A stretch of DNA of 64,000 bases from contig CATNEN010000033.1 in assembly GCA_950097015.1 (NCBI GenBank), positions 2,294,001 through 2,358,000 of the forward strand, written 5' to 3'. Below are positions 28,323 to 52,188 of the stretch, piece by piece (position 1 is the first letter of the stretch; each line of letters opens with the position of its first letter). This DNA is from Macrostomum hystrix (lineage: Eukaryota > Animalia > Platyhelminthes). The notes beneath the pieces were generated by a model. That model was given only the letters and a program-made list of their open reading frames with translations. It searched no databases and had not been told where the DNA came from. A program made the translations under genes and the position numbers.

Positions 28323-28343
28323 CCCACTCTGATTGCAGTTGCC

Positions 28344-31300: not shown

Positions 31301-33909
31301 GCCTTCGTGGACCTCACCACAGGAGCTGTGCACTTCTTTCGTGACGGACGCGACCGCGAAAGTCCACTCGATCTGCTGGAGGTGTCGCCAGCAAGGTGAG
31401 ATTGAGTACCAATTCTGTTTTTTCGCATGATCATGCTCACCAATCCCATGACAATGCTGAGCAATCCCATGAACTTGCTCACGCCCACCCCAGGCAATAC
31501 TTGGCCCTCGGCTTTCGCGACAAGCCGGCTGAAATCTGGGACCTGCGCTCACTGGCCCTGATCGGCGAACTGCCCGCCCGCTTTCCCCGCCCGGTGGCGC
31601 TGGAGTGGGGTGGCTCCGCGTCTGCCGCCCAGCGGGCCACCGCCAGGAAGATCGGCGTCCGCTCTCACCTGGCCGACGACGCCACCCTGAGGCCCGACTT
31701 CTCGGCAGCCGGCTCCGCTTTCCCCACCGACTGCGCCCTGCCTGCGGGCCAATTCGCCAGGGAGAACTTTGTCCTGTTCGACCAGGAGGGCCACATGACT
31801 CTGGTGAGTGTGGAGGGCTCCATCATTCGCGAGGTGTCACGACTGCCGCCGGACACCGCTCTAGGCCGGGTGTCGGCCGTGGTTTGGAAGGCGGACATGA
31901 TGGTGATCGGCGACACAGACGGCGGCCTGGCTCTGTGGGACCTCAAGAGCAAGACCTCGCGCAGCATTTCCACTCAGCGGGGCTGCGTCAGGCGGCTCAA
32001 ATTCGCGCCGGGGTCCGGTGAGATGAGCTAGAGGGGAGAAGAGAGGTCAGAAGAAAGGGCAGAAGAGAGGGGAGAAGAAAGGGGAGAAGAGAGGGGAGAA
32101 GAGAGGGGAGAAGAGAGGGGAGACGAGAGGGAAGCAAGAGAGGAAAGGAGGGGAAAAGGCGAGAGAGCAGAGAGAGGGAGACAGAGGAGAAATGAGAAGA
32201 GAGATAAGAACAGAGGATAGAAGTGAAAGGAGAAGAGGAGAGAAAAGTGAAGACTTTAGAGCTTGGTGGACTGCAGATACAGTCTAATAAAAATTAAGGT
32301 ACTGACCAGAGGGCCAGATAATAATGATAATAAAATAGAATTAATCTAATTGCATTTTAAATCCCTCTGTAAACCCTCACTCTGTAGGCAACTACAAGTT
32401 CCTGGCGTTGTTCCCCAACGGCCTGGAGCTCTGGGACGCCCGGGACGCCGCCCCGAAGCTGACGGCTCTGGCTAGCCTGCGCTGCCCCAGGCAGCTTCCA
32501 GACCTGCTGGACGCTGATTGGGCCGCCTCCGACAAGCCGCTCCTGCTGACCGCCGATTGGCTGATCCGCATCACCGACATGTCCCTGAGGGCCTGCGTGT
32601 CCGCGGCTGACCCGGCCGCCTTCCAGCAACCTCCGCCCATCCCGGGCCTGTTCTCCGACAGGGCGGTCCGGCTGGCCAGGCAGCGGCTGCAGGCTGGCCG
32701 CAGTGTCGGCGCGGCTATTGATGATGAGGAGGAGGACGGGGAGAAGCAGGAGGCCGCCAGCGCGGAGGTTCAGGAGCTGCTGAGCAGGCTCGATGCGGAC
32801 TGGCTGGCCGAGGTCGCGGCTGCGGGTTTGAGCACGGTGGATCGCTGCCTGCTCACAGCGATGCTGTTCTGCGATGCATTCGAGGTGAAGCAACTCTGCT
32901 GCCTTTGTTGGTCTTCTCATCCTGCGCCAAAATTCGCAACAGTATTCCCATATTCCCAATCAATTTCACTGGAAAGTCCCAGTGTTTTCAGTCCAAATCC
33001 CAGATCCCATTTTGCCAGAGCTGTAATCCCCGAATCCCCGCACCGCAGGTTCGCTTCTGGCTGCTCTGCCGCCGCTACCTGCCCCCGGCCCCGGGCCCGG
33101 CTGATCCGTGCGCGGAGCTGGAGGCCGGCTGGGACTCGCTGAGTCCGCACTCAGTCTACCGCAGCTGGCAGGCTCGGAGGCTGGCCAGCTTGCTCAACAA
33201 GCGGAGGCGGCTCAGCCAGGGCCAGACCCAGCGCCTGGTGGAGTGTCTGGTGCTGTTCGGCAGGCTGGACAAAGCCGTGCAGCTGCTGCTTGAGTCTGAG
33301 CCCACCAGCCCCGCCTACCTGGCCGATTTGCACCTCGCCTGCCTGCTGGCCAATCAGCCAGCCTCCCCGAATGCTCAGAGCACCGTGAAACTCGTTGCCA
33401 CCAGCCTCATGGCCAACGGCCGCGTGTCCGAGGGCGCCCAGCTGCTGTGCCTCATCGACCGCAAGCTGGACGCCTGCCGCTACCTGGAGCAGCACGGCGA
33501 GCGAAGCACCGCCCTCTGGCTGGCCAAGTGCGGCCTGCGCGACCCGGCCGAGGCAGCGGAGATCATTCGCCGACACGCCGGCCACCTGGCTGCCACCGAT
33601 CCGTGCCAGGCCGCGCTGCTGCTCATCGCTCAGAGCGACTGGGCCGGCGCCTGCGACTGCCTCAGCCGCCGTCTGGGACTGGCCGGCCTGGCCTGCCGCC
33701 TGCTGGCCGCCTGCGTCGAGGCCGGAAGGCTGGCCCGCCGGCCGCAGGACATCGCCGAACCCGCCGACCGGGCCGCCTGGCGGGAGGCGCACTCGGCCTG
33801 GGCTAGGCAGCTGGCCCTGCTGGGCGACGAGCGCGGAGCCAGGAGGTGCGCGAAGCTCGCCGACCTGGCAGCCGAACCTGGCGGGGAGAAGGACAAGCCT
33901 ACCGACTGA
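28344..33909 (+). CDS. WDR11: WD repeat-containing protein 11 homolog, ~1303 aa
   Basis: Exons 28344-29107, 29726-29999, 30082-30336, 30579-31205, 31286-31395, 31494-32017, 32388-32884, 33049-33909 join in frame. Motifs match WDR11: DWGSQGLLA, LWNADTGALLWRK, DPFD, QYLALGFRDKPAEIWD, AVQLLLE, STVKLVATSLMANG, ACRYL. Confidence 0.92.
29185..29690. repeat. 16/17-bp minisatellite (TTATCCCATTTCACAGA)n
   Basis: Fills WDR11 intron 1. Confidence 0.92.
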
Positions 33910-33917
33910 GCACTGCG

Positions 33918-34145
33918 GAACTGGCTCTGATCCCCTCTGAGAACTGGCTCTGATCCCCTTTGTCAACAGGCTCTGATTCCCTCTGAGAACTGGCTCTGAT
34001 CCCCTCTGAGAACAGGCTCTGATCCCCTCTGAGAACTGGCTCTGATCCCCTCTGAGAACAGGCTCTGATTCCCTCTGAGAACTGGCTCTGATCTCCTTTG
34101 ACAACTGGCTCTGATCCCCTCGGATAACTGGCTCTGATCCCTATA
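33918..34145 (+). repeat. 23-bp minisatellite (CTCTGAGAACTGGCTCTGATCCC)n, array 1
   Basis: Starts just after the WDR11 stop; ~10 units. Confidence 0.9.
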
Positions 34146-34673
34146 AGAACTGGTTTTGAGAACTCCAGATCAGCACATGTCAGCCGTTGCCAAAATCACT
34201 AATAAAGTCATTCCGCAATGCTCTACTCTTTGCAACTTGACCTGTTCCGTCATTTATAATATACTTGTGTTGTGCGTCGCATGTTATGTTAGTGGCAAAG
34301 TTCCTATTAAACGTGATTGAATTTGTCAATAATTTTTTAATTCTGAATTAGTGCAGTTGCCCAAATTTTCTGTTGTTTATCGAGTCTTAAAGATTTTGCG
34401 ATTATCACATATAATTATCCAATAATATTTCAAGTTTGGTTCAGCCTTTTAAAGCAGAATTCCTTGTGGCTTCTTTATCTTATATTTCTATTTCAAATTT
34501 CGATTTCGTTTTTCTAAACGGCTGTGAGCTTTATCAGGAAAATTTAGCTGTTCATATTTACATTGGGTAGCTACATTGGGTAGCTATGGTAAGTGTTTGT
34601 CAGTCTACCAGTTTAAATGGGCCGCGCGCAATGCGAGCTGCAAAGGCACGGTTACAAGAATCTGATTGCAGAA

Positions 34674-35213
34674 ATGGACCCATTAACTTTGAATATGCTG
34701 CTCACCTTTGTTAGCCTGCCTGTTACTGGCGACAGCTGGGGCTACTGCGGCCCCGGCAGCTTGTGGGACCCCGGACAGCGACAGTGTCTGCTGTGCACCG
34801 AGTCAGACAAGGCCAGCATCGAGGAGTGCCGAGACAGCGCTGACCGCTCCAGCACTGGTGGAAGGTCGTGGACGCCGACTGCCGTGACAACTGGAACTGA
34901 GCCAACTAAGGCAGGGCAAGGCTTTCTAGCGATGAAAATTGCCTTACCTTCAGCAGCAATAGCAGCTCTTGTGATAGGAGTGGCGCTCTGGTTTGCACTC
35001 TTCCAGCGCACGTGTTGCATACCCAGCACGCAGCCTAGGACTGATTCTGCCAGCCAAATCACCATGGTCAGACAGCAGCCTCTACCAAATTCAGGCAGCC
35101 AAGGAGAGCATCGGGATGACGATCGGCAGCCGCTGAATCAACCTCTTAGGACTGATCAACCCCTCGTGACGAACCGGCCATTCACGGATGAAACTTACGC
35201 GAATCCTGACTGA
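34674..35213 (+). CDS. Receptor-like gene A: signal peptide, 4-Cys mini-CRD, S/T stalk, one TM, tail ending TYANPD (179 aa)
   Basis: Single ORF (an upstream in-frame ATG at 34617 is also possible). Contains CGPGSLWDPGQRQCLLC...EEC and TM IALPSAAIAALVIGVALWFALF. Confidence 0.75.
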   Translation: MDPLTLNMLLTFVSLPVTGDSWGYCGPGSLWDPGQRQCLLCTESDKASIEECRDSADRSSTGGRSWTPTAVTTGTEPTKAGQGFLAMKIALPSAAIAALVIGVALWFALFQRTCCIPSTQPRTDSASQITMVRQQPLPNSGSQGEHRDDDRQPLNQPLRTDQPLVTNRPFTDETYANPD

Positions 35214-35472
35214 TTGCTGACTGATTGCTGACTGATTGCTGACTGATTGCTGACTGATTGCTCACTGATTGCTCACTGATTGCTGACTGATTGCTCACTG
35301 ATTGCTCACTGATTGCTGACTGATTGCTGACTGATTGCTGACTGATTGCTGACGGATTGCTGACTGATTGCTGACTGATTGCTGACTGATTGCTGACGGA
35401 TTGCTGACTGATTGCTGACTGATTGCTGACTGATTGCTCACTGATTGCTCACTGATTGCTCACTGATTGCTC
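35206..35472. repeat. 11-bp repeat (GACTGATTGCT)n starting at the gene A stop codon
   Basis: About 24 units. Confidence 0.9.
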
Positions 35473-35715
35473 ACTCACAAAAAATGCAGCAGAAAAAATA
35501 TTTTTTTATGATTACGCAAAGATTACACGTGGCTTAAAATTTTCCACTTTTATTGATGCCATTGCTTTCAAAAGTGCGCTTAACAGCTCTTTAACGATAA
35601 AACTTGTTATCTTCAGGAAACAAGCTCAAATACTCGTACTTTTAGCCTGCGAAAACCCATTTACTCGTAGTAGCGATCCTGGTATTAACACTGCGTAGAT
35701 TTGATGTCTTTCCGG

Positions 35716-36525
35716 CCCTTTGACAACAGGCTCTGATCCGCTCTGAGAACTGGCTCTGATCCCCTTTGAGAACTGACTCTGATCCCCTTTGACAACAGGC
35801 TCTGATCCCCTTTGACAACTGGCTCTGATCCCCTCTGAGAACTGGCTCTGATCCCCTTTGACAACAGGCTCTGATCCCCTTTGACAACAGGCTCTGATCC
35901 CCTTTGACAACTGGCTCTAATCCCCTCTGAGAACTGGCTCTGATCCCCTCTGAGAACTGGCTCTGATCCCCTTTGACAACTGGCTCTGATCCCCTCTGAG
36001 AACTGGCTCTGATCCCCTCTGAGAACTGGCTCTGATCCCCTCTGAGAACTGGCTCTGATCCCCTTTGAGAACTGGCTCTGATCCCCTTTGACAACAGGCT
36101 CTGATCCCCTCTGAGAACTGGCTCTGATCCCCTCCGAGAACTGGCTCTGATCCCCTCTGAGAACTGGCTCTAATCCCCTTTGAGAACTGGCTCTGATCCC
36201 GTTTGAGAACTGGCTCTGATCCCCTTTGAGAACTGGCTCTGATCCCCTTTGACAACTGGCTCTGATCCCCTTTGACAACTGGCTCTGATTCCCTCTGAGA
36301 ACTGGCTCTGATTCCCTCTGAGAACTGGCTCTGATTCCCTCTGAGAACTGGCTCTGATCCCCTTTGACAACTGGCTCTAATCCCCTCTGAGAACTGGCTC
36401 TGATCCCCTCCGAGAACTGGCTCTGATCCCCTCTGAGAACTGGCTCTGATCCCCTTTGACAACTGGCTCTGATCCCCTCTGAGAACTGGCTCTGATCCCC
36501 TCTGAGAACTGGCTCTGATCCCTTG
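35716..36525 (+). repeat. 23-bp minisatellite, array 2, same unit and orientation as 33918-34145
   Basis: About 35 units. Confidence 0.92.
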
Positions 36526-36890
36526 CTAAAACCTAACTTCAGCCTAATGCTTAGACTTCTGTTCATACCAAATGATCAGTACATTAATCGGTACTAAGGG
36601 TTTGTCTACCGAGACAGTGAAGTTAAGGGCGTTGCTTTTCTTTACCTTTTCGTCGTCTGCCTTTTAGCTCGTCTTCTGCAGACCAAACTGAAGTTTTAGA
36701 TATTTTAAAGGTGAGTAGACCAGGCTATTTTCTTTTTCGTTGGCATGTGCTTGCTTGTGCTTATCGCCTGCATGCAATTGCACAAATGTTTCATATGGAG
36801 TGTTACATTTTAACTGCCTATTTATATAGCTTACGTTCTTCAGTCATAGTTGCTTGCTTCAATTTTCTAAAAGAAAGACTGATTTCTGGG

Positions 36891-37760
36891 ATGGACCTGG
36901 CAGCTCTCTGTCTGCTACTCTGCTGTCTGTGCCTGGCTAATGTCTGCGGACACTCAGCCAACTGGATCGTCTGCGGCCCCGGCCGCTGGTGGGACTCCGG
37001 ACAGCGACAGTGTCTGCTGTGCACCGAGTCAGACAAGGCCAGCATCGAGGAGTGCCGAGACAGCGCTGACCGCTCCAGCACTGGTGGAAGGTCGACAACA
37101 GGCACCGCCGCAGGAACCGCTGAGCCAAATAGTGCTTCACCGACTGACAGAAGTGCAGTCATTTCGGTCACTGTACCTTTAGTAGTCTTACTGGTTATTG
37201 CTTTTGGATTAACGATTTTGTACTTTTGGTGTAAGCGTCATGCCCAGGAGCCCCAGGCCCTTCCGGAAGCTGTGTCATTGATAGCTGTCAATGTTAATGT
37301 TGCTAATCCTAATGACGCTAATGCTAATGACGTTAATCCAAATGAGGCTAATGCTAATGACGCTGATCCAAATGACGCTAATGCTATTTACGCTAATCCA
37401 AACGACACAAATCTTAATGATGCTAATAATAATGACGCTAATGCTATTTACGCTAATCCAAACGACACAAATCTTAATGACGCTAATCATAATGACGCTA
37501 ATCATAATGACGCTAATGCTATTGAAGCTAATCCTAATTACGCTAATCCTAATGACGCTAATACTAATGACGCTAATCCTAATGTCGCTAATCCTAACGA
37601 CGCTAATACTATAAATGACGCTAATGCTATTGAAGCTAATCCTAATTACGCTAATCCTAATTACGCTAATGCTAATACTAGTAGTAGGGGTTCTCAACCA
37701 GAGACCAGAGGTGACCGAATGACGCGATGGCCTGACACGCATCCAGTTTATCCGAGCTGA
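36891..37760 (+). CDS. Receptor-like gene B: signal peptide, 4-Cys mini-CRD, TM, Asn/Ala/Asp-repeat tail with YANP motifs (289 aa)
   Basis: The ATG at 36891 opens a hydrophobic leader (MDLAALCLLLCCLCLANVCG). The CRD is shared with gene A; TM is VISVTVPLVVLLVIAFGLTILYFW. Confidence 0.8.
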   Translation: MDLAALCLLLCCLCLANVCGHSANWIVCGPGRWWDSGQRQCLLCTESDKASIEECRDSADRSSTGGRSTTGTAAGTAEPNSASPTDRSAVISVTVPLVVLLVIAFGLTILYFWCKRHAQEPQALPEAVSLIAVNVNVANPNDANANDVNPNEANANDADPNDANAIYANPNDTNLNDANNNDANAIYANPNDTNLNDANHNDANHNDANAIEANPNYANPNDANTNDANPNVANPNDANTINDANAIEANPNYANPNYANANTSSRGSQPETRGDRMTRWPDTHPVYPS

Positions 37761-38651
37761 GTTACATCTAACTCACTTAGCGATGTTAGCCTGTAAAAAC
37801 TCGAAACACATTTTGAGACAGAATTTCGACTATTTGGCTTTTTCACAGAACAAATTTGTAAAAAAATTATATTTAGTCATGTGATAACATTTTCTCTATA
37901 CAAATACACTTTGACAGGCTATCCTAATCGCCGTAGCAAAGTAATGCAGTGAGTAGTAAAATGTGCAAGTTGTTCAACGCGCAACTCAAAGTAATATTAC
38001 AAGAAAACCGAAGCTTTTATTGCTAATCTATTTTTTGGAATGTGTCATGATGACTAATATGCTATTTTTATAAACAAAGTCATGTGACTTAAAACCGGAG
38101 AACTCGTTCTCAACAGCTGTATTACTCATACTCCAATATATGGTAATGCTCACTTGAAAAACTCCAAAACGCAGCTAAACAAACAAGTTTGACCTAATTT
38201 GACAGATTGACAAATTGTGCAAATATGTATGCACTAATTAAACACCCGGTCCTAAACCGGTTTTCCGTTAAAATACAAGTTAAAATCTGAGCTGAAAAGT
38301 CAGGCTCGGAGCGGTCCACCGACTTCAAAACAGCTTTAAGAATACTCATTAGAAGAGGGAAAGACAAGAGGTAACAAGAGGTAAGCGCTTTACTAGACAG
38401 AGTTAGTTATTGCTAGCAATCGTTGTTGAAGTGAACTAAGTTTACGAGTGCCGCATACCGTCGATACATTTGAGAAAGGCCTCCTTGTTTCCTAGAATAC
38501 ATTCCTAGTGGATTATTGATTGATTGATTTGAGTTATCCGTTATCTTTCGGAGGTAACAAAGAAGACGCCCTTCAGGAGGACCTATCAGAGAGACACAAG
38601 GAGGACCTACGAGTATTATAGGGAGTTTTGTGTGCCTGATCAACACACAAT

Positions 38652-39120
38652 AGTCTGTGAGTTTGATGGGATAGTCTGTGAGTTTGATGGGATAATCTGT
38701 GTGTTTGATGGGATAATCTGTGAGTTTGATGGGATAGTCTGTGAGTTTGATGGGATAATCTGTGTGTTTGATGGGATAATCTGTGAGTTTGATGGGATAG
38801 TCTGTGAGTTTGATGGGATAGTCTGTGAGTTTGATGGGATAATCTGTGTGTTTGATGGGATAATCTGTGAGTTTGATGGGATAGTCTGTGAGTTTGATGG
38901 GATAGTCTGTGAGTTTGATGGGATAATCTGTGTGTTTGATGGGATAATCTGTGAGTTTGATGGGATAGTCTGTGAGTTTGATGGGATAATCTGTGTGTTT
39001 GATGGGATAATCTGTGAGTTTGATGGGATAATCTGTGAATTTTTTGGGATAATCTGTGAGTTGGATGGAATAATCTGTGATTTGGATTGGATAATCTGTG
39101 TTTGATTGGATAATCTGTCA
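38652..39120. repeat. 21-bp minisatellite (TCTGTGAGTTTGATGGGATAA)n
   Basis: About 22 units. Confidence 0.92.
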
Positions 39121-39203
39121 GTTTAAAGGCCATGGTGTTCGATAAATATCGATAAAGCAGTGTTGTATGAAAGTGTCATTAGTGTTCTCATGGAGCATAT
39201 ATT

Positions 39204-39578
39204 GTGTGTAAAGCAGGCCGATGCAGACACGTGTCTACCGCAGAATCTGCGCCCCTCAGACCTCGAATTCCCAGCCATTCTATCCTCCGCGGCTGCCACA
39301 GCCCCCACTCGCCAATGAGCTTTGCCATGGCGCGCCTGACACCCTCAACGAACTCGTCCGCTCTCAGTGGGCAGAGCGCGCGGGCAGCCTCCCTCACCGC
39401 CGGCCGCTCCTGGCAAGAACCGATTTTCCGAGCCCGTCATCAGTCGCTGACTGCCAGCCTCGCGGAGCTCAGTGACGTCGCCAGGCTGCACTCTGCCGCA
39501 ACCCCAGAGTCAGCCGCCTTTTTTACCTGTCTGCCGAGCAGCCGCGAGGACACGCGCCTTTCAGACATTGAGCTGTGC
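39204..39578 (+). mobile_element. Degenerate non-LTR retrotransposon fragment (CRE-clade-like region C-terminal to RT)
   Basis: The peptide RSWQEPIF...DVARLHSAATPESAAFFTCLPSS...TRLSDIEL resembles the recalled W.EP...ARL.....ESG.WL..LPS...G..L motif of CRE-like elements. Isolated GC-rich patch with no RT core. Confidence 0.55.
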
Positions 39579-39927
39579 ATAAATTTTCTTATATTTTCTT
39601 TTGTATTGTTGTGTATTTTTTATATACGAGCAATATTAACAATGCACATGTCAATAGGGTGTAGATTTTTATTACATTTTGCATTAAAATAAACTAAAAA
39701 ACACGTTATTGCCTCAGGACAGTTGCTGCCTTTTCTGTGTCATCTTTACGAGCTCGTAGATAATAAAACTTGCAGGTGTTTCTGTTGCTAAGGTACTTAT
39801 GTATCTTCTCTACTTGAAGATTTCCCTAGTTGCAATGTACATCATTTCGAATTTGCTTGTGATAAAGACGTCATTGATACGCTCATACAATGTACGCACG
39901 TCATTGGTGGCTCCACCTCGAGCAGCC

Positions 39928-39934
39928 TATAAAA
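39928..39934 (+). promoter_or_regulatory. TATA box candidate upstream of gene C
   Basis: TATAAAA 200 bp upstream of the ATG, with a reverse CCAAT (ATTGG) at ~39903. Confidence 0.4.
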
Positions 39935-40127
39935 AGTCTTCTTTTAACATACGCTCACATTTCTATTTCTAAACATTATCTTCTAGGCTATTTACGAGCT
40001 CGCAAAATACTACAATAAAGCATTGTATCATTGAGCAAAAGCATTTTGCATACAATAACAGGTACAAAAGCTATTCAGCGTTTAAGCACCTCATCATCAA
40101 GATCAAGAAATTTTCTTAAGCGCTGCA

Positions 40128-40847
40128 ATGTTTTTCAGAACATTCTTCTGGACTGCCATCAGTCTCGTCTTCATCGCCAGCACACTGGAACAGGTTTCAG
40201 CTAGTGGCGATGTCGCCTGCGATAGACCGGGAATGTTCTTCGACTCGCACCAGCATAAGTGTGTCGCCTGTCCGCAGCCATCTTTGGATCAGCAGCATAA
40301 TCAGTTCTACCTGGCTGTCTGCGCGGAGCATCCAGTTTGCTGCTTCACCAACTCCGGTGTGACGGTTGAGCAGCCTGTCCTACCAACGAAACCGGAAGCG
40401 CCGGAGGCACCGGAGGCACCGGATGCTCCCAGATCAACAGCTGATACACCAATCGGGTCAACCGTAGGTCCGCAGACAGTAAACAGGATCACACAGTTTG
40501 TCATCGGGCTAGCTTTGGCAGTGATTGTTGCTTTTGTCGTGCTGGCCATTGTCATTTTCTGTGCCTGCAGCAGCAAGCATGCCAAGAAACCAAGGCGGTG
40601 TGGCGACTTAGAAAGCGGAGAACCTGGAGACCCGCAGACCTCCGTTGGCTCCCCAGCAGCTGTCGACAGTCGAGACGCGGACAGGAGGTCTCTGCTGTCA
40701 GCTGGTCCGCCCGCTGTGGACTCTTCCAGTCGAGCGCGCACGGTTGCCAACGGGTTGGTCTATGATCCTCTACGTCCACACAATGCGCACTCAGCCGATG
40801 GGACTGTGAATTCTATTTATGATGATCCTGATGAAGCTCTATCTTAG
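40128..40847 (+). CDS. Receptor-like gene C: signal peptide, 6-Cys mini-CRD, P/T stalk, TM, Tyr-motif tail (239 aa)
   Basis: Contains CDRPGMFFDSHQHKCVAC...VCAEHPVCC, TM FVIGLALAVIVAFVVLAIVIFC and tail ...LVYDP...SIYDDP. TATAAAA lies at 39928-39934. Confidence 0.82.
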   Translation: MFFRTFFWTAISLVFIASTLEQVSASGDVACDRPGMFFDSHQHKCVACPQPSLDQQHNQFYLAVCAEHPVCCFTNSGVTVEQPVLPTKPEAPEAPEAPDAPRSTADTPIGSTVGPQTVNRITQFVIGLALAVIVAFVVLAIVIFCACSSKHAKKPRRCGDLESGEPGDPQTSVGSPAAVDSRDADRRSLLSAGPPAVDSSSRARTVANGLVYDPLRPHNAHSADGTVNSIYDDPDEALS

Positions 40848-41240
40848 TATCAACTTTTTGCCCTAAGCGTTTTGTAAATTCACATTGAATAGCGCAATTA
40901 CTGATGGCATTGGTACCAAGGCTTCTTCAATAAAAATGTTTTTAATTAAAATGAATGTTACTCATACATTTTTAATCGTGCGAGATTTACAGTAATTGCC
41001 ACAGAATGGGATGCTTTCTTCTTCTATAATAAATAATATATTCTTCACTTCATGTTTATAGAGTTCAAAGTAATTAAATTAATCAAAAAAGAGAAGTGAG
41101 GTGAGCTGCTTTCTCAGTTAAGACAAAAGATTCTGTTCTAAGCGACTGAGATCATATTTTTTTCTGGCAGTTTTGTTTTAGGCGCATGCGTAAATGACAG
41201 ATTCCCATAAATTATTTGGGGGCCTAATTTTAAACTGCGC

Positions 41241-41248
41241 TGACGTCA
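41241..41248. promoter_or_regulatory. CRE/ATF palindrome TGACGTCA upstream of gene D
   Basis: Exact 8-bp palindrome ~170 bp before the ATG, with TATATTAAA at ~41318. Could be a chance match. Confidence 0.3.
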
Positions 41249-41411
41249 CTAGGAAATAAACTTTCAAGTCTTCGCGAATGTCTATTTTTAGCTCATTCAG
41301 AAATACTGATATACTCCTATATTAAAGGAGCATATTAGAGCATATATACTCGTAAAAGCAGTGTCAACTTTCGCTAGTAAATTTTTTAGACGTTGAAACC
41401 AAGTATTAAAT

Positions 41412-42146
41412 ATGTGTCATCACAGCATCTGCAGCATCGGAATTCTCCTGACGCTGATTGTCAATGGTGCTTCGGCGCACACTTCAGCTACGAAGGAACT
41501 CGAGTGCGCCGCTGAAGGAAAGTTATTCGATCCAAATACGGACGTCTGCGTTGACTGCCCTTTGCCCTCCTCGGAGCTCCAGCAGATGTTGTTCTATCAG
41601 AGAGCATGTGACATGCATCCAATTTGCTGCCTTCCTGGCTTCACAGAGAAGCCTGAGCAGCCCACCCAGAGCATTGCTACAGAGTCGACAGAGACATTGG
41701 AAGGCACGTCACCTGTTACATCGATTCGACCAACCCCGAGTACCAAGGAGAATCGTGCAGCTCTTGCTCCCGTCACAGTAGCTGTCACACTGCTGGTCTT
41801 AGTCATCAGTGTGACCGTGTTTTGCGCTGTCCTAATCGTCAAAGCTTGCAAGAACAGGTCCAAACAAGCGAGTGACGTTGAGAACGGCAGGTGGGTAGCC
41901 GAAAGCACCGGTGGAAGTAGACTTGCGACTCCGGAACCAAGCGAGGTGAGTTTTGTGTCCACACAGGATGCGGACGGGCCATTGCTAGCCAGTCAGCGGG
42001 CTGACAGAGCAGCTTCTAGCCCACCTGAAATGGTTGCCAATCTGCTTGTTTACAACAATGATCCAGATGGACATCAGCATATGCATGTTTATTCGGACAG
42101 TACACAGGACTCACAGACATATGAAACCTTGGATTCGAACTATTAA
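41412..42146 (+). CDS. Receptor-like gene D: signal peptide, 6-Cys mini-CRD, T-rich stalk, TM, Tyr-motif tail (244 aa)
   Basis: Contains CAAEGKLFDPNTDVCVDC...ACDMHPICC, TM VTVAVTLLVLVISVTVFCAVLIV and tail ...LVYNN...TYETL. Paralog of gene C. Confidence 0.82.
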   Translation: MCHHSICSIGILLTLIVNGASAHTSATKELECAAEGKLFDPNTDVCVDCPLPSSELQQMLFYQRACDMHPICCLPGFTEKPEQPTQSIATESTETLEGTSPVTSIRPTPSTKENRAALAPVTVAVTLLVLVISVTVFCAVLIVKACKNRSKQASDVENGRWVAESTGGSRLATPEPSEVSFVSTQDADGPLLASQRADRAASSPPEMVANLLVYNNDPDGHQHMHVYSDSTQDSQTYETLDSNY

Positions 42147-42565
42147 TGCATTTTTATTTAAGTTTACCACCCGCGAAATCTAACTTCGTAAGAATCGAGG
42201 GAGTCACTTCTGTTTTTTTCTTTTTGTTTACATATTTTATTGTAGCAATGAGCCGCTTATTCAGCTTTTAAATGCTTAATTTCCGTCTGGGACACAGAAA
42301 ATTACACAAGATTGTGCTCAAGTCCCCTTTCGGATTGACTTTTGAACTATACCTTCTAACCATCTACCTTCTACCTTCTAACAACCCCTAGCAGTACAGT
42401 GATATGCACACACTCTGAATACGCTAGTTTAGTTCCAAGTTGGAGTGTACAGTTGGTCAGCGTACTCAGTCTCACATTTGTGCGAGTGCGAGCTGGGATG
42501 CCATTTTAAAGACGTAAAACTCTGAGAATTAAAATTTTTTTTAGCCAAGAAAGCTGGGTTAATAC

Positions 42566-43377
42566 AGCAATCCACTACAGCTATAGCTTGCACAGCAATC
42601 CACTACAGCTATAGCTTGCACAGCAATCCACTACAGCTATAGCTTGCACAGCAATCCACTACAGCTATAGCTTGCACAGCAATCCACTACAGCAATAGCT
42701 CGCACAGCAATCCACTACAGCTATAGCTCGCACAGCAATCCACTACAGCTATAGCTTGCACAGCAATCCACTGCAGCTATAGCTCGCACAGCAATCCACT
42801 GCAGCTATAGCTCGCACAGCAATCCACTGCAGCAATAGCTCGCACAGCAATCCACTACAGCTATAGCTTGCACAGCAATCCACTACAGCTATAGCTCGCA
42901 CAGCAATCCACTACAGCTATAGCTTGCACAGCAATCCACTACAGCTATAGCTCGCACAGCAATCCACTACAGCAATAGCTCGCACAGCAATCCACTACAG
43001 CTATAGCTCGCACAGCAATACACTACAGCAATAGCTCGCACAGCAATCCACTACAGCTATAGCTCGCACAGCAATCCACTACAGCAATAGCTTGCACAGC
43101 AATCCACTGCAGCTATAGCTCGCACAGCAATCCACTACAGCTATAGCTCGCACAGCAATCCACTACAGCAATAGCTCGCACAGCAATCCACTACAGCTAT
43201 AGCTCGCACAGCAATCCACTACAGCTATAGCTCGCACAGCAATCCACTACAGCTATAGCTCGCACAGCAATACACTACAGCAATAGCTCGCACAGCAATC
43301 CACTACAGCTATAGCTCGCACAGCAATCCACTACAGCTATAGCTCGCACAGCAATCCACTACAGCTATAGCTCGCAA
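42566..43377. repeat. 28-bp minisatellite (CACAGCAATCCACTACAGCTATAGCTCG)n
   Basis: About 29 units ending ~15 bp before the gene E ATG. Confidence 0.92.
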
Positions 43378-43391
43378 TTAGTAGAGTCAGC

Positions 43392-44087
43392 ATGGCGGCA
43401 TCAAAGAGTGCCTGCTTGGTCATCGCGTGTCTCTCAGTTCTCCTCCAACCGCTGTACGTCACCAGCTCGCTGCCATCCGAATGTCCGGACAGAATGGTGT
43501 TCGACCCGCACGTCCATCAGTGCGTAGTTGAACGCCTTCCAGCAGGAAGCGACAGACCAATGGAGCCAGAATCGCTTACCACTACTCATGGCCTGGATGT
43601 CATTGGAAACTCTCTGCTCACGAATGCGTCGTCAGTTATCAACAAAACCAATGTCTATGGGAATGCGAATGAAAACTATGAACCAACAGTCCGAGTGATC
43701 GTGGTAGTCATTTGTTCAGTTTTTGGACTGCTCGTCCCGCTGATAGCATTCTCCGCCTTGCTATCTTGGCTCCTGGGACGCGAATTTCATTGCAGAAAGC
43801 TTCTACGAAATAATAAAGCGATTGCTTCTGTCGCGCAAGATGTGGAAGCAAGCTTCGGTGCTACTGTCGATGGCGATACCGTCCGAGGTGACGTCAACGG
43901 AGGACAGGGCAGAAGTTTCAACAATAGCCGTCCCGAAAGGCCGCTTCCGGATATTCCTCAGGAAGACGGGGACGTGGGAACGCCGCTGCTGCCAGGAGGA
44001 AGCCTACCGATTAGCGACGGCAGCCAAGTCTTCGATCGCATCCCACAGAGGCTAGCTGAATACTCTGGATTAAGTATGGACTCCTGA
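43392..44087 (+). CDS. Receptor-like gene E: signal peptide, 2-Cys hairpin, TM, Pro/Tyr-motif tail (231 aa)
   Basis: Contains CPDRMVFDPHVHQC, TM VIVVVICSVFGLLVPLIAFSALLSWLL and tail RPLPDIP...YSGL. Confidence 0.78.
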   Translation: MAASKSACLVIACLSVLLQPLYVTSSLPSECPDRMVFDPHVHQCVVERLPAGSDRPMEPESLTTTHGLDVIGNSLLTNASSVINKTNVYGNANENYEPTVRVIVVVICSVFGLLVPLIAFSALLSWLLGREFHCRKLLRNNKAIASVAQDVEASFGATVDGDTVRGDVNGGQGRSFNNSRPERPLPDIPQEDGDVGTPLLPGGSLPISDGSQVFDRIPQRLAEYSGLSMDS

Positions 44088-44204
44088 TTGTACATGTAGA
44101 TATTTCGCTTGCTTTCTTCCGAATTTAATAGAGTATCAAGCTACAAAGCATAAGTCTTTGAAATACATTACATAAAAAATAACAGAAACAGTGAACTTTC
44201 CAGG

Positions 44205-44412
44205 GGGCTGTGGGCTCTGTCATTAAACAGACAGTGGGCGAAAGGGGGAGCGCAACCAGCGAGGGGCGATTCTGCCCGTTCTGCTGACTCCTGAGCACAC
44301 GTGCACTTTCTCATCGTCAGGCAGTGTACACTCTCACTGTGACTTGGAGTTTGGCCTTCTCTCTGTGGCTGCGCCCTAAATGATTGTGCCCTGGTCGTGA
44401 AATCGAGCTCTT
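44205..44412 (+). repeat. Dispersed ~210-250 bp element, copy 1
   Basis: Shares the blocks GGGCTGTGGGC, CTCCTGAGCACAC, TCAGGCAGTGT, GTGGCTGCGCC and AATCGAGCTC with copies 2 and 3. Confidence 0.75.
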
Positions 44413-44924
44413 TATCTATCTATCTGCAGGGGGCCCGGGGCACTTGTCACACAAGCGACGGAGCGGCACGCCCCCAGACCGGCGAACTAGGCGCTTTAGC
44501 GCCCATCGCGCCGCCTCCCCTGCCCTGAGCAGGCACCACACACAGCAGCACAGACCAGCCGGGGAGGGCAGGAGGCACCCAGAATAGGCAGCAGTGTCCC
44601 CCACCCCCGCCTCACACGCACAAGCAGACCAAGCCGGGGCGAAAGGCTGATAAGAAATCAGTCCTCAGGGGGGCCAGGTGATGAGTGTACACTTATCCAA
44701 TCGCGCTGACGGAATTCCAGAGAGCGCGCGGCGATGTACACCCGCCCTCCAGCCACCCCCCGCAAGGTCTAACGCCCCAGCGCCAACGCACAAACTCATA
44801 CAACGCAGAACAGGCACACAGAAGGTAGGAGCGAAGCTATTATTTCAAGCTTTGCACGAAATATGGTGCACCTCCGCCGGTCGCTACTGTCCAAACCCCC
44901 CAACAAGTCCCGAAATTAATCGTG

Positions 44925-44996
44925 ACTTGAAGGGTGAATCGAACTAGCGTCCTTTGGAGTGCGAGGCAGCGACGTTAGCCGCTGACCCACTCGCCC
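44925..44996 (-). mobile_element. tRNA-derived (SINE-like) Pol III head
   Basis: Minus strand has an A-box-like TGGGTCAGCGG (44989-44979) and a B-box GTTCGATTC (44944-44936) at tRNA spacing. It does not fold into a clean cloverleaf. Confidence 0.55.
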
Positions 44997-45747
44997 CCGA
45001 AATCGAGCTCAGTGACATTGGTCTAACCGCTCTTCCAAATATTCAAATAGAGTGACTTCTACTCTATTCTCTGAAGCTTGTCTTTTGCGTGAGGCCTAAC
45101 GAAATGTAATTAGAAAAAACTGTTTATGTTCGCCATTTCTTTTAGAATTTTTAATGGTTTTATTTTTAATGAAAGCTGATGAAATACTCGTGCCTGTACA
45201 TGGAACTGACGGTGAATAGCCGATGATGTCATCCTACTATAAGTGGCTGCACAAGGTACTACTAAGATAAAAAAATAATTAAAAAAATGAATCAAACCTG
45301 GGCATTTCCTCGCACTATATATACCTGTTACGTTTAGTTACTTTCGAGCGTGCTATATACTTGTAAAATTCTGCTTCAGGTAAAGGGAAATTGAACTGGA
45401 ATTAAATATATATATTGTGAGTACATTTTATGCAATTACTAAAGAAAACACTAGTAAACTTTTGTAAAATTGGCTTTAAGTTTTTTGTCACGATTATTTT
45501 ATTTTTTTAATATTATATTATATGCTATTTATAGTAGCTGCACAAAATATATAATAGCATTCTCTGTTGGGTTCTAGCTTTCATAAACCCGAAATGTCAC
45601 AAAGAAAGAAAGTGTCTTTCAGCATTCTTGATTCTTTCATCATTCTTCATCATCATTTCATGATTCTTTCAACATTGTGAAAATTCGGGTCTGTGAAACG
45701 ACTCACACTGCAAGCACCACAGTGCCAGCTGAGGGCCATTTTGAGCC

Positions 45748-45888
45748 TTCAGCCTGATGGAATTGGCCTCTTCAGCCTGATGGAATTGGCCTCTTCAGCC
45801 TGATGGAATTGGCCTCTTCAGCCTGATGGAATTGGCCTCTTCAGCCTGATGGAACTGGCCTCTTTAGCCTGATGGAACTGGCCTCTTC
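45748..45888. repeat. 23-bp minisatellite (TTCAGCCTGATGGAATTGGCCTC)n
   Basis: About 6 units. Confidence 0.85.
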
Positions 45889-46744
45889 CTAGCTATCAAA
45901 GCTTGTCGCGATTAATAGACTGTACTATCTTACTCCAAAAATACAAATACGAAAACAAATCTGCATATACGACCTGGCGAGACGGCGCGGCAAGGCCTTG
46001 GCCGCATTTTGATCTTTGGTGCTGTTCTCTGAAGCCCTGTCGGACAGGGCCAGGTACCAGCTGTTCCGGTTCGGTCGTTGACACCACCCTGATGTACAAT
46101 GCTGAGAACACTGAGCCCATTTTGTCCACTTCAACTAGCATTTGCCCGGTCTTGTCAGTCCTGCGGGGCTCAGCCCTCCCCTTTTACGCCTGCGCTGATT
46201 GGCTGGATTAGCTGTCACCCTTGCCCTGCTTTTCTGCCCCGCCAGGCCCACCCCTTGTGGTTGTACTCATTTAAAGCCTTTCTGTGATTTGAACGCACAT
46301 TTTTCGATTGCCACAGGATATTCTGTAATAGCCTTTGTTTACTCTGATCTGATAGGATTCTGATCTGATCTGATCTGATATGAAAGCTTGTTGAGGCAGG
46401 CACTCCAGTTGCTGCGATTAAAATTTAGCACCTATATTTTATTTTTGCAAAGGGAACTCTTCCGATTGGTTGAAGGGATAGTAAGGCAAGCTCGACCAGA
46501 TAGTGTGCGCTGCTATATAATTAAACTTCGCTAAAGAAGTTAACTATATTTTATAATGACAAAAACTTATTTTTAATTTACTCACTGAGCCTCATTGCGT
46601 ATTGTTTTAGATGAGCGCAAAGCTTAGAATACCCACGGAATATTCTTGGAGTTGCCGCGAAATTTCCTCGAAGGCTTACAAATTCTCGCCGAATACGAGT
46701 AGCTGAAAAGCATTCTTTGTAGGCAAAAGTGACTGCTGAGAGCC

Positions 46745-47611
46745 ATGACAGTCCTATCTGTGATGTCTGCCGCTTGGATCCTAGTCGGCCTGTTCAGCCT
46801 CATCGATCCAATCGCTTCGAAGCCGGTCTGCGAGCCTGGCTTCAGATTCGACGGGTTCATTCACCAATGCGTGAAGGATCGAACGTCAGGAGTTTTAGAC
46901 GCTGCACCGACAGCGATTCCAACTGATGTCCGTCCTACGCAGCAGCACACCGCAGCTTCGTCGCCTCAGACTTCAACTCGGCCCGCTGGTGGGGATTCCG
47001 GCTTCAGTTTTGGACAGTGGGAGTGGCTGACTATGGTGATCCTTCTGATCGCTCTGGTGCTGCTTCTTATCGGTGTCCTCGCCTGGAGCATTCAGAATCG
47101 CCGTCTAGTCTGTAAGGACGCAGTTCGAGGCTGCTTTCGGCGACTAGCGAGTGCGGAAAGGGACGCGGTTGACTGGGGCGGCGACGGCGAAGGCCGCGGC
47201 GACGGCGAAGGCCGCAGCGACGGCGAAGGCCGCGGTGACGACGAAGGCCGCGGCGATGGCGAAGGCGAAGGCCGCGGCGACGGCGAAGGCCGTGGCGAAG
47301 GCGAAGGCCGCGGCGACGGCGAAGGCCATGGCGAAGGCGAAGGCCGCGGCGACGGCGAAGGCCGCGGTGACGGCGAAGGCCGCGGTGACGATGGCGACGG
47401 CGAAAGCTGCGGCGAAGGTGAAGATGCTGAAATCGAAAATGAAGTCAACTCGCGAGCCCGCCGGAGCCAACCTTTGCCAGCAGTTCCAAGTCACGAGTCG
47501 ATTCCGCTGCTCTCAGGAGCAGAGGAACTTGCTAGCGGCGCTGTCGCTGATATTCTTGAAGCTCGGGAAGGCCTTGACGATGCCACTTATACAGCTTTGT
47601 CTACAGTGTAA
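46745..47611 (+). CDS. Receptor-like gene F: signal peptide, 2-Cys hairpin, TM, GEGRGD-repeat tail ending YTALSTV (288 aa)
   Basis: Contains CEPGFRFDGFIHQC and TM WLTMVILLIALVLLLIGVLAWSI. The tail motif PLPAVP...PLL is shared with gene E. Confidence 0.78.
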   Translation: MTVLSVMSAAWILVGLFSLIDPIASKPVCEPGFRFDGFIHQCVKDRTSGVLDAAPTAIPTDVRPTQQHTAASSPQTSTRPAGGDSGFSFGQWEWLTMVILLIALVLLLIGVLAWSIQNRRLVCKDAVRGCFRRLASAERDAVDWGGDGEGRGDGEGRSDGEGRGDDEGRGDGEGEGRGDGEGRGEGEGRGDGEGHGEGEGRGDGEGRGDGEGRGDDGDGESCGEGEDAEIENEVNSRARRSQPLPAVPSHESIPLLSGAEELASGAVADILEAREGLDDATYTALSTV

Positions 47612-51100: not shown

Positions 51101-52188
51101 GTGATCGCCCTGATGGAGTGGCCGGAGCCGGTGTGGCCGACATGCTCGCTCTTTGACGCCAGGATCAGCTTCCACGGACAGCCGGGCAACCGGGGCTCGA
51201 ATCTGCCCAGGTAGGCGTCAAACTCGGCGGCGTGGGTGGCGCGCACGGGGCGCGGGAGAGCGGACTTTGGAAGCAGCGACAGCCGGCCCGTGGACTTGCA
51301 GCAGGCCAGGCTGTTGGGTGCGTCTCGGTCGCTAGGCAACGAGTGCGACAAAAAATGCGCATGTTTCCACATTCATTTGATGCCTTGGCAACACGCTTTC
51401 CAAGCCCATTTGTAGCCCATTGGGTCGGTGCACAGCGGTTAACTCGTTTGCCTCTCGCGCCTATATCCCTGAGCTCGATTCCGCGGCGAGGCAACATTCA
51501 TTTGAGGCGCAGCCACGGAGAGAAGGCTTGGGGGCTTGTCGTGCTTGCCCTTGAGGCACAGTGAGAGTGTACACTGCCTGACGATAAGAAAGTCAGGGCA
51601 GATGTACACACCTGTGTGAGCGTGTGCCTGCGTACGGTATCTGTGTGCGTGTGTGCTCAGGAGTCAGCGAAATGATTGCCTCCTCGCTGACTGCGGTCTA
51701 GTGTCAATCAATGATTTCACCAAGCTGTAAAATGGGTACCAGCATTAGGTGAGCTAGACATTTTGGTAGGTGTTGCGGCCCCCACCCGGCCAGTCCATGG
51801 ACTAAACAGTTGTACACAGCCTTTGGAAAGCATCGCGCAATAGCTTTGCAAGACAAGCCCTCTGCACTAGCGTTCCTGAAATAAAGTTCGAGAAAGTGCA
51901 TTTAACCCACCGATAGTACATGTAGTAGTACTTGTCGCACTCGCACAAATACAGCAGCCTCCTATTTGTGAAATAAGCCACCTCGGGCTCCTCCAGGGAG
52001 GCCGGCACAACGCCGAGGTCGGCGGCGACGTCAGCTAGCCGGACTTCACGGCGAATTTCGGCGGCCGCCACTAGCGGCTGGCAGTGATAGTCGGCGAGGC
52101 CCTCGACGCAGCAGAACTCGGGCGCCTTGTAGAATTGCACGGGCCCCGAATCGCCCCCTCCGTCTTCGTATGTACGATGCGGCTTCAT
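48112..52188 (-). CDS. Unrecognised spliced gene, ~1002 aa if one base at 48609-48612 is removed; 5' end uncertain
   Basis: Exons 52188-51911, 51310-50756, 50398-49288 and 49177-48112 have GT-AG boundaries and matching phases (2, 2, 0). Their total is 3010 nt = 3009+1, and codons are GC3-rich throughout. Confidence 0.65.
50423..50655 (+). repeat. Dispersed element, copy 2 (intronic)
   Basis: Same blocks in the same order as copy 1; lies in intron 50755-50399 of the minus-strand gene. Confidence 0.75.
51465..51715 (-). repeat. Dispersed element, copy 3 (inverted, intronic)
   Basis: Reverse complement of copy 2 (CCCTGAGCTCGATTCCGCGGCGAGG...GTGTGCTCAGGAG); lies in intron 51910-51311. Confidence 0.75.

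Follow-up and report, generated by a model that had tools for sequence, protein, structure and literature searches.

A Six-Gene Cluster Beside WDR11

The window—the whole 64-kb stretch of Macrostomum hystrix DNA analyzed here—carries six ORFs, designated A to F, on its forward strand. An initial annotation had proposed such a set of same-strand genes, and all six are present at the positions below, directly downstream of WDR11.

28344..33909, + strand: WDR11 exons, the synteny anchor directly upstream of the putative receptor cluster
34674..35213, + strand: gene A, 179 aa, 4-Cys type, hairpin Cys codon at 34746, transmembrane (TM) segment 89-109
34745..34868, + strand: A/B near-identical block, 124 nt, 97.6% identical to 36971-37094 in gene B
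36891..37760, + strand: gene B, 289 aa, 4-Cys type, hairpin at 36972, TM 90-110
39976..41182, + strand: gene C contig span, colinear public-run contigs, depth 56-116, taken as an unspliced transcript
40128..40847, + strand: gene C, 239 aa, 6-Cys type, hairpin at 40218, TM 124-144
41363..42457, + strand: gene D contig span, colinear public-run contigs, depth 8-17, taken as an unspliced transcript
41412..42146, + strand: gene D, 244 aa, 6-Cys type, hairpin at 41505, TM 123-143, C-terminal YETL
43392..44087, + strand: gene E, 231 aa, 2-Cys type, hairpin at 43482, TM 102-122, C-terminal YSGL
46745..47611, + strand: gene F, 288 aa, 2-Cys type, hairpin at 46829, TM 96-116

All six predicted proteins share one architecture: an N-terminal hydrophobic 10-mer (mean KD 2.1-3.3), a single hairpin motif of the form C-x(4-7)-[FW]D-x5-C, a stalk of 34-57 residues containing 26-45% S/T/P, one strong TM segment, and a tail whose last Tyr lies 1-9 residues before the C terminus. 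The leader, hairpin, stalk, TM, and Tyr-ended tail described at the outset are thus recovered in 6/6 proteins, with leader and TM assigned by hydropathy. A six-frame scan of the 64 kb with C-x(4-7)-[FWY]D-x5-C returned exactly six matches, one per gene, where block shuffles averaged 0.69 and never exceeded 3; a relaxed motif gave zero further matches in the six-frame translation of the window.

The number of cysteines between hairpin and TM defines three grades: four in A/B, six in C/D, and two in E/F. A C-x2-C element follows the hairpin in A-D and is absent from E/F.

Gene Structure Across the Three Grades

In gene C, the cysteines after the hairpin follow the order C-x2-C, x17, C, x5, CC, and the tail contains an acidic-xxx-LL motif, the ITIM-like sequence LVYDPL, and, 9 residues before its end, a second Tyr. 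Gene D is 28% identical to C across the full length and has tail motifs in common with it. Both loci are covered by contigs from three public runs that are colinear with the genome and show no joints or loose ends. These contigs run from 39976/40032 to 41028/41182 for C and from 41363 to 42310/42457 for D, with little or no cover on the flanks. A TATA-like box lies at ~39929, and AATAAA signals lie near 40930 and 41029. Because the cover is uneven and gene-shaped, we read the contigs as RNA, the run type not being on record. The proposed lack of coding introns accordingly holds for C and D, the two genes compared with contigs.

Genes A and B share a hairpin module and differ in their tails. 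The ectodomain of A comprises leader, hairpin, C-x2-C plus one more Cys, and stalk; its 70-aa tail has a YANP motif at the end, and its stop codon falls inside the opening repeat unit of an 11-bp array (35206-35475). The tail of B is enlarged by a coding 15-bp tandem repeat (37302-37676) with repeated YANP and NPxY motifs. The ORF of A opens further upstream, at ATG 34617, and B also has in-frame ATGs upstream of 36891, the start homologous to that of A. The near-identical 124-nt block coincides exactly with the cysteine-rich module. Since A and B have no detectable DNA similarity outside it, we interpret the block as a conversion or exchange tract.

The 2-Cys genes retain the hairpin alone. 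Gene E has two N-glycosylation sequons in its stalk, and its closest M. lignano relative is a 215-aa gene (L001:19689-20336). Gene F has a tail enlarged by a Gly/Asp/Glu/Arg-rich coding 18-bp repeat (47178-47390) and ending with E-xxx-LL and YTAL motifs. Minisatellites are abundant in the region and give rise to long spurious ORFs.

Conserved Synteny and Rapid Divergence

The arrangement recurs in M. lignano: downstream of WDR11 lie, all on one strand, a 4-Cys gene, three 6-Cys genes, and a pair of 2-Cys genes, and WDR11 with the three-grade cluster is found in two assembly copies/loci. WDR11 is conserved between the two species (81% nt, 82% aa identity; dN about 0.1, dS about 0.75), whereas the receptor genes are roughly 30% identical to their counterparts (range 28-45%), with dN of 0.7-0.8. 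By hhalign, the 6-Cys members align with the 4-Cys members at 90% probability (E 2e-6) and with the 2-Cys members at 87% (E 4e-6, 19 aligned columns); judged by these alignments, the three grades are one family.

Among 1.84 billion representatives, the sole relatives are M. lignano proteins, and 0/6 of the A-F proteins occur in a 15-billion-protein collection. NCBI labels the M. lignano relatives hypothetical. UniProt names the 6-Cys relatives "TNFR-Cys domain-containing protein", which suggests that another curated profile matches them, and leaves the 2-Cys gene uncharacterized. The family was initially described as lineage-specific, diversifying, and liable to be annotated as hypothetical; the first two descriptions are borne out by the restriction to M. 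lignano and by the contrast with adjoining WDR11, and the third by a largely unannotated status.

Sequence Similarity to TNF Receptors

Family profiles ranked BAFF-R and BCMA best in the PDB (E 0.007-0.03). With a 9-sequence profile, hmmsearch placed BAFF-R first (E 0.0073; next match 0.11), aligned across the hairpin and C-x2-C. With a 15-sequence profile, the top 11 of 177,635 sequences were BAFF-R and BCMA (E 0.011-0.26), the BCMA alignments covering positions 8-52 of 55. Profiles built from the 6-Cys domains alone found zero TNFR matches in the PDB, and the sequence similarity therefore rests on about 20 hairpin residues.

Curated models gave sub-threshold matches. None of Pfam TNFR_c6, TACI-CRD2, BCMA-Tall_bind, BaffR-Tall_bind, and stn_TNFRSF12A reached its gathering score across 15 ectodomains. 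Gene C scored best against TACI-CRD2 (15.1 bits, cut-off 22.9, E 0.024) and gene B against TNFR_c6 (14.3 bits, cut-off 29.4, E 0.055); for the remaining 13, TNFR-superfamily models gave no match. Two 2-Cys members matched CBM_14 (E 0.026, 15.1 bits, cut-off 22.1) over model positions 28-47 only. In the proposed profile comparison of TNFR families with CBM14, the former rank best in the PDB, no Pfam cut-off is reached, and the CBM_14 hits are as strong as the TNFR ones. CBM14 membership was rejected: the domain needs six Cys in about 53 positions, and the matching members offer two Cys and 20 positions below cut-off.

A sushi-domain protein scored close to BAFF-R with the smallest profile; with a larger one, BAFF-R and BCMA rose and sushi fell. 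Poxvirus complement-control proteins gave summed weak hairpin-like matches (E 0.025 to 0.56) that weakened as the profile grew. Membership of the sushi/CCP class (four Cys, about 60 residues) was likewise rejected, there being no Pfam match and only weak hairpin-like similarity. The Asp of the hairpin is invariant in 15/15 aligned members and the Leu of DxL is absent from all of them; in A-F, the residue two after the Asp is H, N, G, or F. The A-F tails contain no domain match, death domain included, and no conserved TRAF-binding motif, with a single TRAF6-type match each in D and E.

Predicted Fold and Embedding Neighbors

In both C (pLDDT 68) and D (pLDDT 72), AlphaFold predicts two strands at the motif, forming a hairpin, and then a 13-residue helix. 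The two proteins have six Cys and this predicted helix after the hairpin, with second-module spacing unlike that of a canonical C2. VIA-align ranked Grindelwald as the best match for both models, with 44/48 residues aligned. Just 3/48,161 chains reached Z 2 for C (Grindelwald 2.6, BCMA 2.0, TACI 2.0); Grindelwald again came first for D (Z 2.5), and BCMA scored Z 2.0-2.4 across models. Foldseek placed BCMA and TACI at the top for both (E 0.18-3). An Atlas shape search returned TACI at TM 0.50 and BCMA at TM 0.48/0.53, within an overall range of TM 0.44-0.53. All of these structural matches score low on an absolute scale (Z 2.0-2.6; rmsd 2.2-3.8 Å; Foldseek E no better than 0.18), and the models may do no more than echo the resemblance in the motif.

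Embedding searches pointed the same way. The neighbors of full-length D were mollusc TNFR-Cys, TACI, BCMA, BAFF-R, Fn14, and wengen clusters (best 0.92), and the C ectodomain lay nearest TACI-CRD2 (0.88) and BCMA (0.85); gene F had weak neighbors (0.83). Single-CRD TNFRs thus came first for the 6-Cys members in two independent structural and two embedding searches. Several lines, each weak but all in agreement, support a TNF-receptor reading, no single likeness test passing a curated or conventional significance threshold. The resemblance to BCMA, TACI, and BAFF-R proposed initially stands insofar as these receptors rank best by profile, fold, and embedding, and is qualified by the sub-threshold scores, the short hairpin on which it depends, and the missing Leu.

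Proposed Model and Alternatives

We propose that A to F form a conserved, fast-diversifying tandem cluster of type I receptors with a reduced TNFR-type CRD in three grades, a reading to which we assign a probability of about 0.64. This CRD would be the sole folded ectodomain: in C/D a disulfide-closed β-hairpin with a helical second module (six Cys; BCMA/TACI/Grindelwald-like), in A/B the hairpin with one more disulfide (four Cys, the BAFF-R count), and in E/F the hairpin alone. The genes would have arisen by tandem duplication beside WDR11 before the M. hystrix/M. lignano split, with later change through fast amino-acid turnover, segment exchange between members, and tail repeat expansion. 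With its aromatic-Asp invariant and the next five residues variable, the hairpin may dock in the groove of the lineage's expanded TNF-family trimers. Clustering could then lead to signaling or endocytosis via motifs in the disordered tails (YxxL/V, ITIM-like, acidic di-leucine), presumably not through a death domain. The cluster proteins may be candidate partners of the worm's many TNF-like ligands. A function in immunity, injury, or cell death, suggested at the outset, is a conjecture. A bolder extension, which we hold to be improbable, is that even E/F and their M. lignano counterparts bind TNF trimers and that receptors and ligands co-diversify as a private recognition system. If so, E/F would be the smallest natural TNF-receptor modules, and a private immune, wound/regeneration, or mating-related system would replace the picture of one receptor per flatworm.

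Spurious ORFs made by minisatellites are frequent in the region and 0/6 proteins appear in public collections, as would suit chance or annotation artefacts in repeat-rich DNA; the motif excess on a common strand with a common architecture, the gene-shaped contig cover on C and D, and the intact syntenic counterparts in M. lignano refute that reading for practical purposes, leaving it a negligible probability. Convergence deserves more weight, although we still consider it unlikely: A-F could be lineage-specific, mucin-like, single-pass surface proteins whose hairpin merely resembles a TNFR A1 module and whose ligands would be, for example, matrix, glycans, or surface molecules of gametes or of a partner. 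Hairpins of the generic form C-x-x-G-x-aromatic-Asp ... C are also present in peritrophin-A/CBM14, sushi, and EGF-like domains. The sub-cut-off Pfam matches point to different families (two 2-Cys members hit CBM_14, one protein hits TACI-CRD2, and one TNFR_c6), the sushi protein scores beside BAFF-R, and the 6-Cys-only profiles match no TNFR. The absent DxL, tails that feature Tyr and di-leucine motifs in place of TRAF or death-domain elements, and very fast evolution, as in recognition or reproductive proteins, fit convergence as well. Against it stand the two-Cys, 20-position extent of the CBM_14 matches, the opposite movement of BAFF-R/BCMA and sushi as the profile grows, the first rank of single-CRD TNFRs in two structural and two embedding searches with 6-Cys members, and the UniProt TNFR-Cys label on the 6-Cys relatives.

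TNFR likeness might also be confined to C/D, with the 4-Cys and 2-Cys genes as decaying or neofunctionalized, non-binding remnants—perhaps serving as decoys or chaperone-like partners, or having no role. The second module is missing from A, B, E, and F, E/F are tied to the 6-Cys members by the 19 columns at 87% probability, the embedding neighbors of F are weak, and the M. lignano 2-Cys gene is uncharacterized in UniProt; transcript support likewise falls on C and D, the loci that the contig comparison covered. The reduced grades, however, are intact from leader to tail in two genomes at dS about 0.75, so neutral decay is not compatible with them. Moreover, the A/B tract keeps exactly the cysteine module, and the four-Cys partial CRD of BAFF-R is, by the title of reference 15 in PMC8024323, a full ligand-binding site. 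We regard this confinement to C/D as very unlikely.

Should the TNFR link of the tandem-receptor reading hold, single-CRD receptors would be reducible beyond BAFF-R, and six receptors with about ten ligands would offer a compact test of the diversification of TNF ligand-receptor specificity, in an animal model that regenerates and is open to RNAi and transgenesis. The six small receptors beside WDR11 would then be candidate partners for the ten M. lignano ligands (PMC7519573). Should the link fail, an unannotated, transcribed (by C/D cover), fast-evolving surface-protein family with domain-level exchange would remain.

Comparison with Known Systems

BCMA (TNFRSF17) and TACI (TNFRSF13B; CRD2) stand for the vertebrate single-CRD receptors for BAFF and APRIL. 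The worm proteins resemble them in having a short ectodomain with one putative CRD and a disulfide-closed hairpin with a central aromatic-Asp, to which A-D add C-x2-C and C/D also a predicted helical second module, for a total of six Cys. They differ in lacking the Leu of DxL and a conserved TRAF motif in the tail, and in a second module of C-x17-C-x5-CC with a conserved His-Pro ahead of CC. They also have a predicted cleavable leader, a feature not known from BCMA or BAFF-R. BAFF-R/BR3 (TNFRSF13C), the "minimal TNF receptor-like module", has a partial CRD with four Cys, the count of A/B, and its hairpin alone is the ligand-binding site; both of its disulfides sit intercalated inside that hairpin (X2 module), whereas the extra pair of A/B follows the hairpin. 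We know of no described TNFR as reduced as the 2-Cys E/F.

Grindelwald is a Drosophila single-CRD TNFR (PDB 6ZSY/6ZT0) that lacks the DxL motif and scarcely resembles vertebrate TNFRs in sequence (PMC8024323). Like the worm proteins as interpreted here, it is from an invertebrate, has one CRD, and is without DxL; its N-terminal hairpin is followed by helices, as the predicted hairpin is by one helix in the C/D models. It has eight Cys (X2 + C2 modules) against six, four, or two here, and is a single gene rather than a graded tandem cluster, with undetectable sequence similarity.

A platyhelminth survey found one NGFR-like, four-CRD receptor per species, with no diversification, and in M. lignano ten TNF ligands against a single described receptor (PMC7519573); the present locus instead holds a cluster of genes with a putative reduced CRD. 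Our literature search found no published description of the cluster, its three grades, or the WDR11 synteny. M. lignano TNF ligands form their own clade, and lophotrochozoans show expansions of Grnd-like/wgn-like receptors beside expanded TNF ligands, including 12 grnd paralogs in Capitella (bioRxiv 10.1101/2024.07.27.603686). Those expansions and the cluster described here are alike as lineage-specific sets of small TNFR-like putative receptors.

Organization of the receptor-like gene cluster

The initial annotation proposed six same-strand ORFs, and all are confirmed on the plus strand at these positions:

34674-35213, + strand, gene A (four Cys before the TM)
36891-37760, + strand, gene B (four Cys)
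40128-40847, + strand, gene C (six Cys)
41412-42146, + strand, gene D (six Cys)
43392-44087, + strand, gene E (two Cys)
46745-47611, + strand, gene F (two Cys)

Cysteine number before the TM thus splits the genes into three pairs, here called grades. The layout claimed for them is present in 6/6 proteins: a hydrophobic N-terminal leader, a C-x(4-7)-[FW]D-x5-C hairpin ∼25–32 residues from the start, a stalk of 34–57 residues (26–45% Ser/Thr/Pro), a single strong TM segment, and a 70–179-residue tail with a Tyr 1–9 residues before its end. Invariant positions in the alignment are limited to the start Met, both hairpin cysteines, and the Asp. A six-frame scan of the whole 64-kb window for C-x(4-7)-[FWY]D-x5-C returned six matches, one per gene and none elsewhere, against a mean of 0.69 in block shuffles; allowing Leu for the aromatic residue added no matches in the window. 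The B and F tails are enlarged by coding tandem repeats (15 bp and 18 bp, respectively), and the stop codon of A falls inside the first repeat of an array with 11-bp units.

The cluster sits between WDR11 exons, directly upstream, and a SacI-domain gene, downstream on the opposite strand. GC content is 60–63% in these housekeeping flanks vs. 42–50% inside the cluster. Surrounding features are as follows:

14874-17678, − strand, BEL/Pao-type LTR-retrotransposon ORF, 934 codons, recognized by eye from translation only
33918-34153, 35716-36522, 38650-39124, 42564-43376, and 45747-45888, minisatellite arrays between receptor genes
48112-51372, − strand, SacI-homology (Syja_N) phosphoinositide phosphatase gene with GC-rich exons, bounding the cluster downstream

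The BEL/Pao-type ORF encodes zinc knuckles of the gag kind, a protease region, and the first part of a reverse transcriptase. An apparent pentapeptide-repeat gene at 27602-28684 (+ strand; Pfam E 6e-44) was rejected as an artifact: The ORF is a translated 15-nt tandem repeat, just upstream of WDR11, with Ser/Leu/Thr/His/Asn units. The intergenic minisatellites have 21–28-bp units in up to 35 copies, with one 23-bp unit on both sides of gene A, and generate long spurious ORFs on both strands.

Transcript-like cover of genes C and D

Three public runs from one study (X2–X4; 42–50 Mb of contigs each, run type not recorded) contain contigs that match the window without any difference:

39976/40032-41028/41182, contig over gene C and short flanks, depth 56–116
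41363-42310/42457, contig over gene D, depth 8–17

Cover is ∼5 between these contigs and zero farther out, and the contigs over C/D show no joints or loose ends. Because such uneven, gene-shaped cover is the pattern of a transcriptome assembly, we infer that the runs are RNA and take C and D to be transcribed and unspliced. The claim that the genes have no coding introns therefore stands for C and D, the genes covered by the reads examined. None of the public runs recorded as RNA contains the stretch. A TATA-like box and AATAAA signals surround C at fitting positions. A 249-nt contig from X1, a run of another study and organism label, matches the tail-coding region of C (40514-40762) with two C>T differences and may come from another strain or a close relative.

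A syntenic cluster in Macrostomum lignano

An exhaustive search of 1.84 billion representatives with a C+D profile found three true relatives, all from M. lignano (E 4e-14 to 1.5e-10), in keeping with the proposal of a lineage-specific family. A fourth match, a 2,491-aa protein, was taken as compositional, with four stretches aligned to the stalk/TM region. A word-indexed homology search gave no match with gene C and M. lignano proteins only with a five-sequence profile.

At the M. lignano locus, both assembly copies (L001 and L002) carry WDR11 followed by six genes on the WDR11 strand: one 4-Cys, three 6-Cys, and two 2-Cys genes, in the grade order of A/B, C/D, and E/F. For WDR11 itself, the window and M. 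lignano share 81% (nt) and 82% (aa) identity (dS 0.71–0.80; dN/dS 0.12–0.16), which places the window in a related Macrostomum genome or makes it an old homeologue. Since the three grades are common to both loci in the same order, they predate the split between these loci, and all are retained as intact ORFs.

UniProt gives the 6-Cys relatives the name "TNFR-Cys domain-containing protein" and calls the 2-Cys relative "Uncharacterized." NCBI labels all of them hypothetical, as was expected of ordinary annotation. The M. lignano 4-Cys gene has no call in public annotation. The cluster is a set of real, conserved, largely unannotated genes. One annotated M. lignano relative, P0003 (L001:10001-10769), finishes in a short spliced exon; its unspliced ORF extends to an end resembling that of the paralogue P0007, and the intron may therefore be an annotation artifact.

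A flatworm survey described a single four-CRD receptor in each species and stated expressly that there was no diversification (PMC7519573). A 2026 preprint counted numerous wgn-like and grnd-like homologues in invertebrates, the wgn-like ones numbering up to 19 in a platyhelminth (bioRxiv 10.1101/2024.07.27.603686); its counts may include the UniProt-labeled 6-Cys proteins. We found no literature description of the cluster, its grades, or its synteny, and no mention of the M. lignano gene names.

Divergence and segment exchange

The family was also proposed to be diversifying, which its fast divergence bears out: The best cross-genome receptor pairs are 28–45% identical, vs. 82% for WDR11 protein. 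Their dN of 0.7–0.8 approximates the neutral distance from WDR11 synonymous sites; receptor dN is set against WDR11 dS because receptor synonymous sites are saturated, so that cross-species dN/dS is not computable. No DNA-level similarity between the window and M. lignano remains beyond WDR11. Between the two M. lignano copies, dN/dS of cluster genes ranges from 0.35 to 1.33, on small counts.

Genes A and B have in common a 124-nt block, 97.6% identical, that spans exactly the cysteine module, and their DNA is unalignable beyond it. Over its 3′ part, the M. lignano 4-Cys gene is 85–96% identical to the tail-coding part of a neighboring 6-Cys gene:

L002:7730-8578 and 13600-13971, exchanged segments
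L001:8333-8700 and 13505-13875, exchanged segments

The exchanged part is in frame in L002, yielding a chimeric 282-aa ORF. To judge from these alignments, cluster members exchange segments, and the minisatellites may promote unequal exchange between them.

Possible relation of the ectodomains to TNF receptors

No Pfam model was above cut-off for the full proteins or isolated ectodomains. Near-misses were split among TACI-CRD2 (C, E 0.024), TNFR_c6 (B, 0.055), and CBM_14 (two 2-Cys members, 0.026); sub-threshold full-length matches to other single-pass families (TMEM154, PRIMA1, SCIMP, and Psg1) reflect the TM and stalk and were rejected. PDB profile searches favored BAFF-R and BCMA as the family profile grew. 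With six sequences, BAFF-R ranked second (E 0.036) beside a sushi protein; with nine it ranked first (E 0.0073; next match 0.11); with fifteen, BAFF-R and BCMA filled the first eleven places among 177,635 sequences, the BCMA alignments spanning nearly the entire profile. The ectodomain could be read as a CBM14 or sushi domain, but the ectodomains lack the defining features of each, and both readings fail on that ground. Profiles of C+D alone or of seven 6-Cys domains gave no TNFR match in PDB, which locates the sequence signal in the hairpin and C-x2-C. Through the hairpin, hhalign linked the 6-Cys to the 2-Cys (87%) and 4-Cys (90%) groups. A full-length 6-Cys vs. 4-Cys hhalign was rejected as CRD evidence: It aligned only the shared tail, which stems from segment exchange in M. 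lignano and is uninformative on the CRD.

Language-model neighbors of full-length D were mollusc "TNFR-Cys," TACI, BCMA, BAFF-R, Fn14, and wengen clusters (best 0.92). The isolated C ectodomain had TACI-CRD2 (0.88) and BCMA (0.85, 0.83) as neighbors, and the neighbors of F were weaker (0.83). AlphaFold models were built for C from a 6-sequence alignment (pLDDT 68) and for D from 15 sequences (pLDDT 72); both show a hairpin, then a helix of 13 residues and a short helical turn. Foldseek ranked BCMA and TACI first for both, with nonsignificant E-values. Of 48,161 chains in a search independent of Foldseek, just three reached Z 2, which for C were Grindelwald, BCMA, and TACI; Grindelwald was again first for D. 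A second-look structural alignment gave 2.5 for Grindelwald and 2.1–2.4 for BCMA, and an Atlas shape search placed TACI, BCMA, and TNFR_c6 clusters among ten rows. On these predicted models, the structural searches agree.

Profile, fold, embedding, and naming evidence point the same way, none decisively, and because each depends on the hairpin, these lines are only partly independent. The TNFR likeness put forward initially is partly supported by the top ranks of single-CRD TNFRs and is the best available reading of the cluster (probability roughly 0.64). Judged by sequence and model, C and D are likely members of the TNFR superfamily, and membership of A, B, E, and F is plausible by descent; membership is not established, since scores fall short of the Pfam cut-offs and the cluster genes lack the DxL motif that marks the BAFF/APRIL receptor subgroup.

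Proposed mechanism

By analogy with BAFF-R, BCMA, TACI, and Grindelwald (PMC8024323), the hairpin is the predicted ligand-binding element. The invariant aromatic-Asp would form its framework, and the five variable residues that follow would determine specificity. Divergent TNF-family proteins of the same lineage would be the candidate ligands; M. lignano is reported to have ten (PMC7519573), which group in a clade specific to that species (bioRxiv 10.1101/2024.07.27.603686).

No domain was found in the A–F tails. Their short motifs comprise YxxL/V close to the C terminus (C, D, E, F, and two M. lignano relatives), YANP (A and B), an ITIM-like motif (C), and acidic-xxx-LL (B, C, and F), and TRAF-type motifs are sporadic; any signaling by way of tyrosine phosphorylation or regulated endocytosis is therefore conjecture. 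Some cluster proteins may act as decoys or coreceptors.

The hairpin-plus-helix topology predicted for C and D is that described for Grindelwald, BCMA, TACI CRD2, and Fn14 (PMC8024323). In its predicted working, the cluster most resembles the single-CRD TNF receptors.
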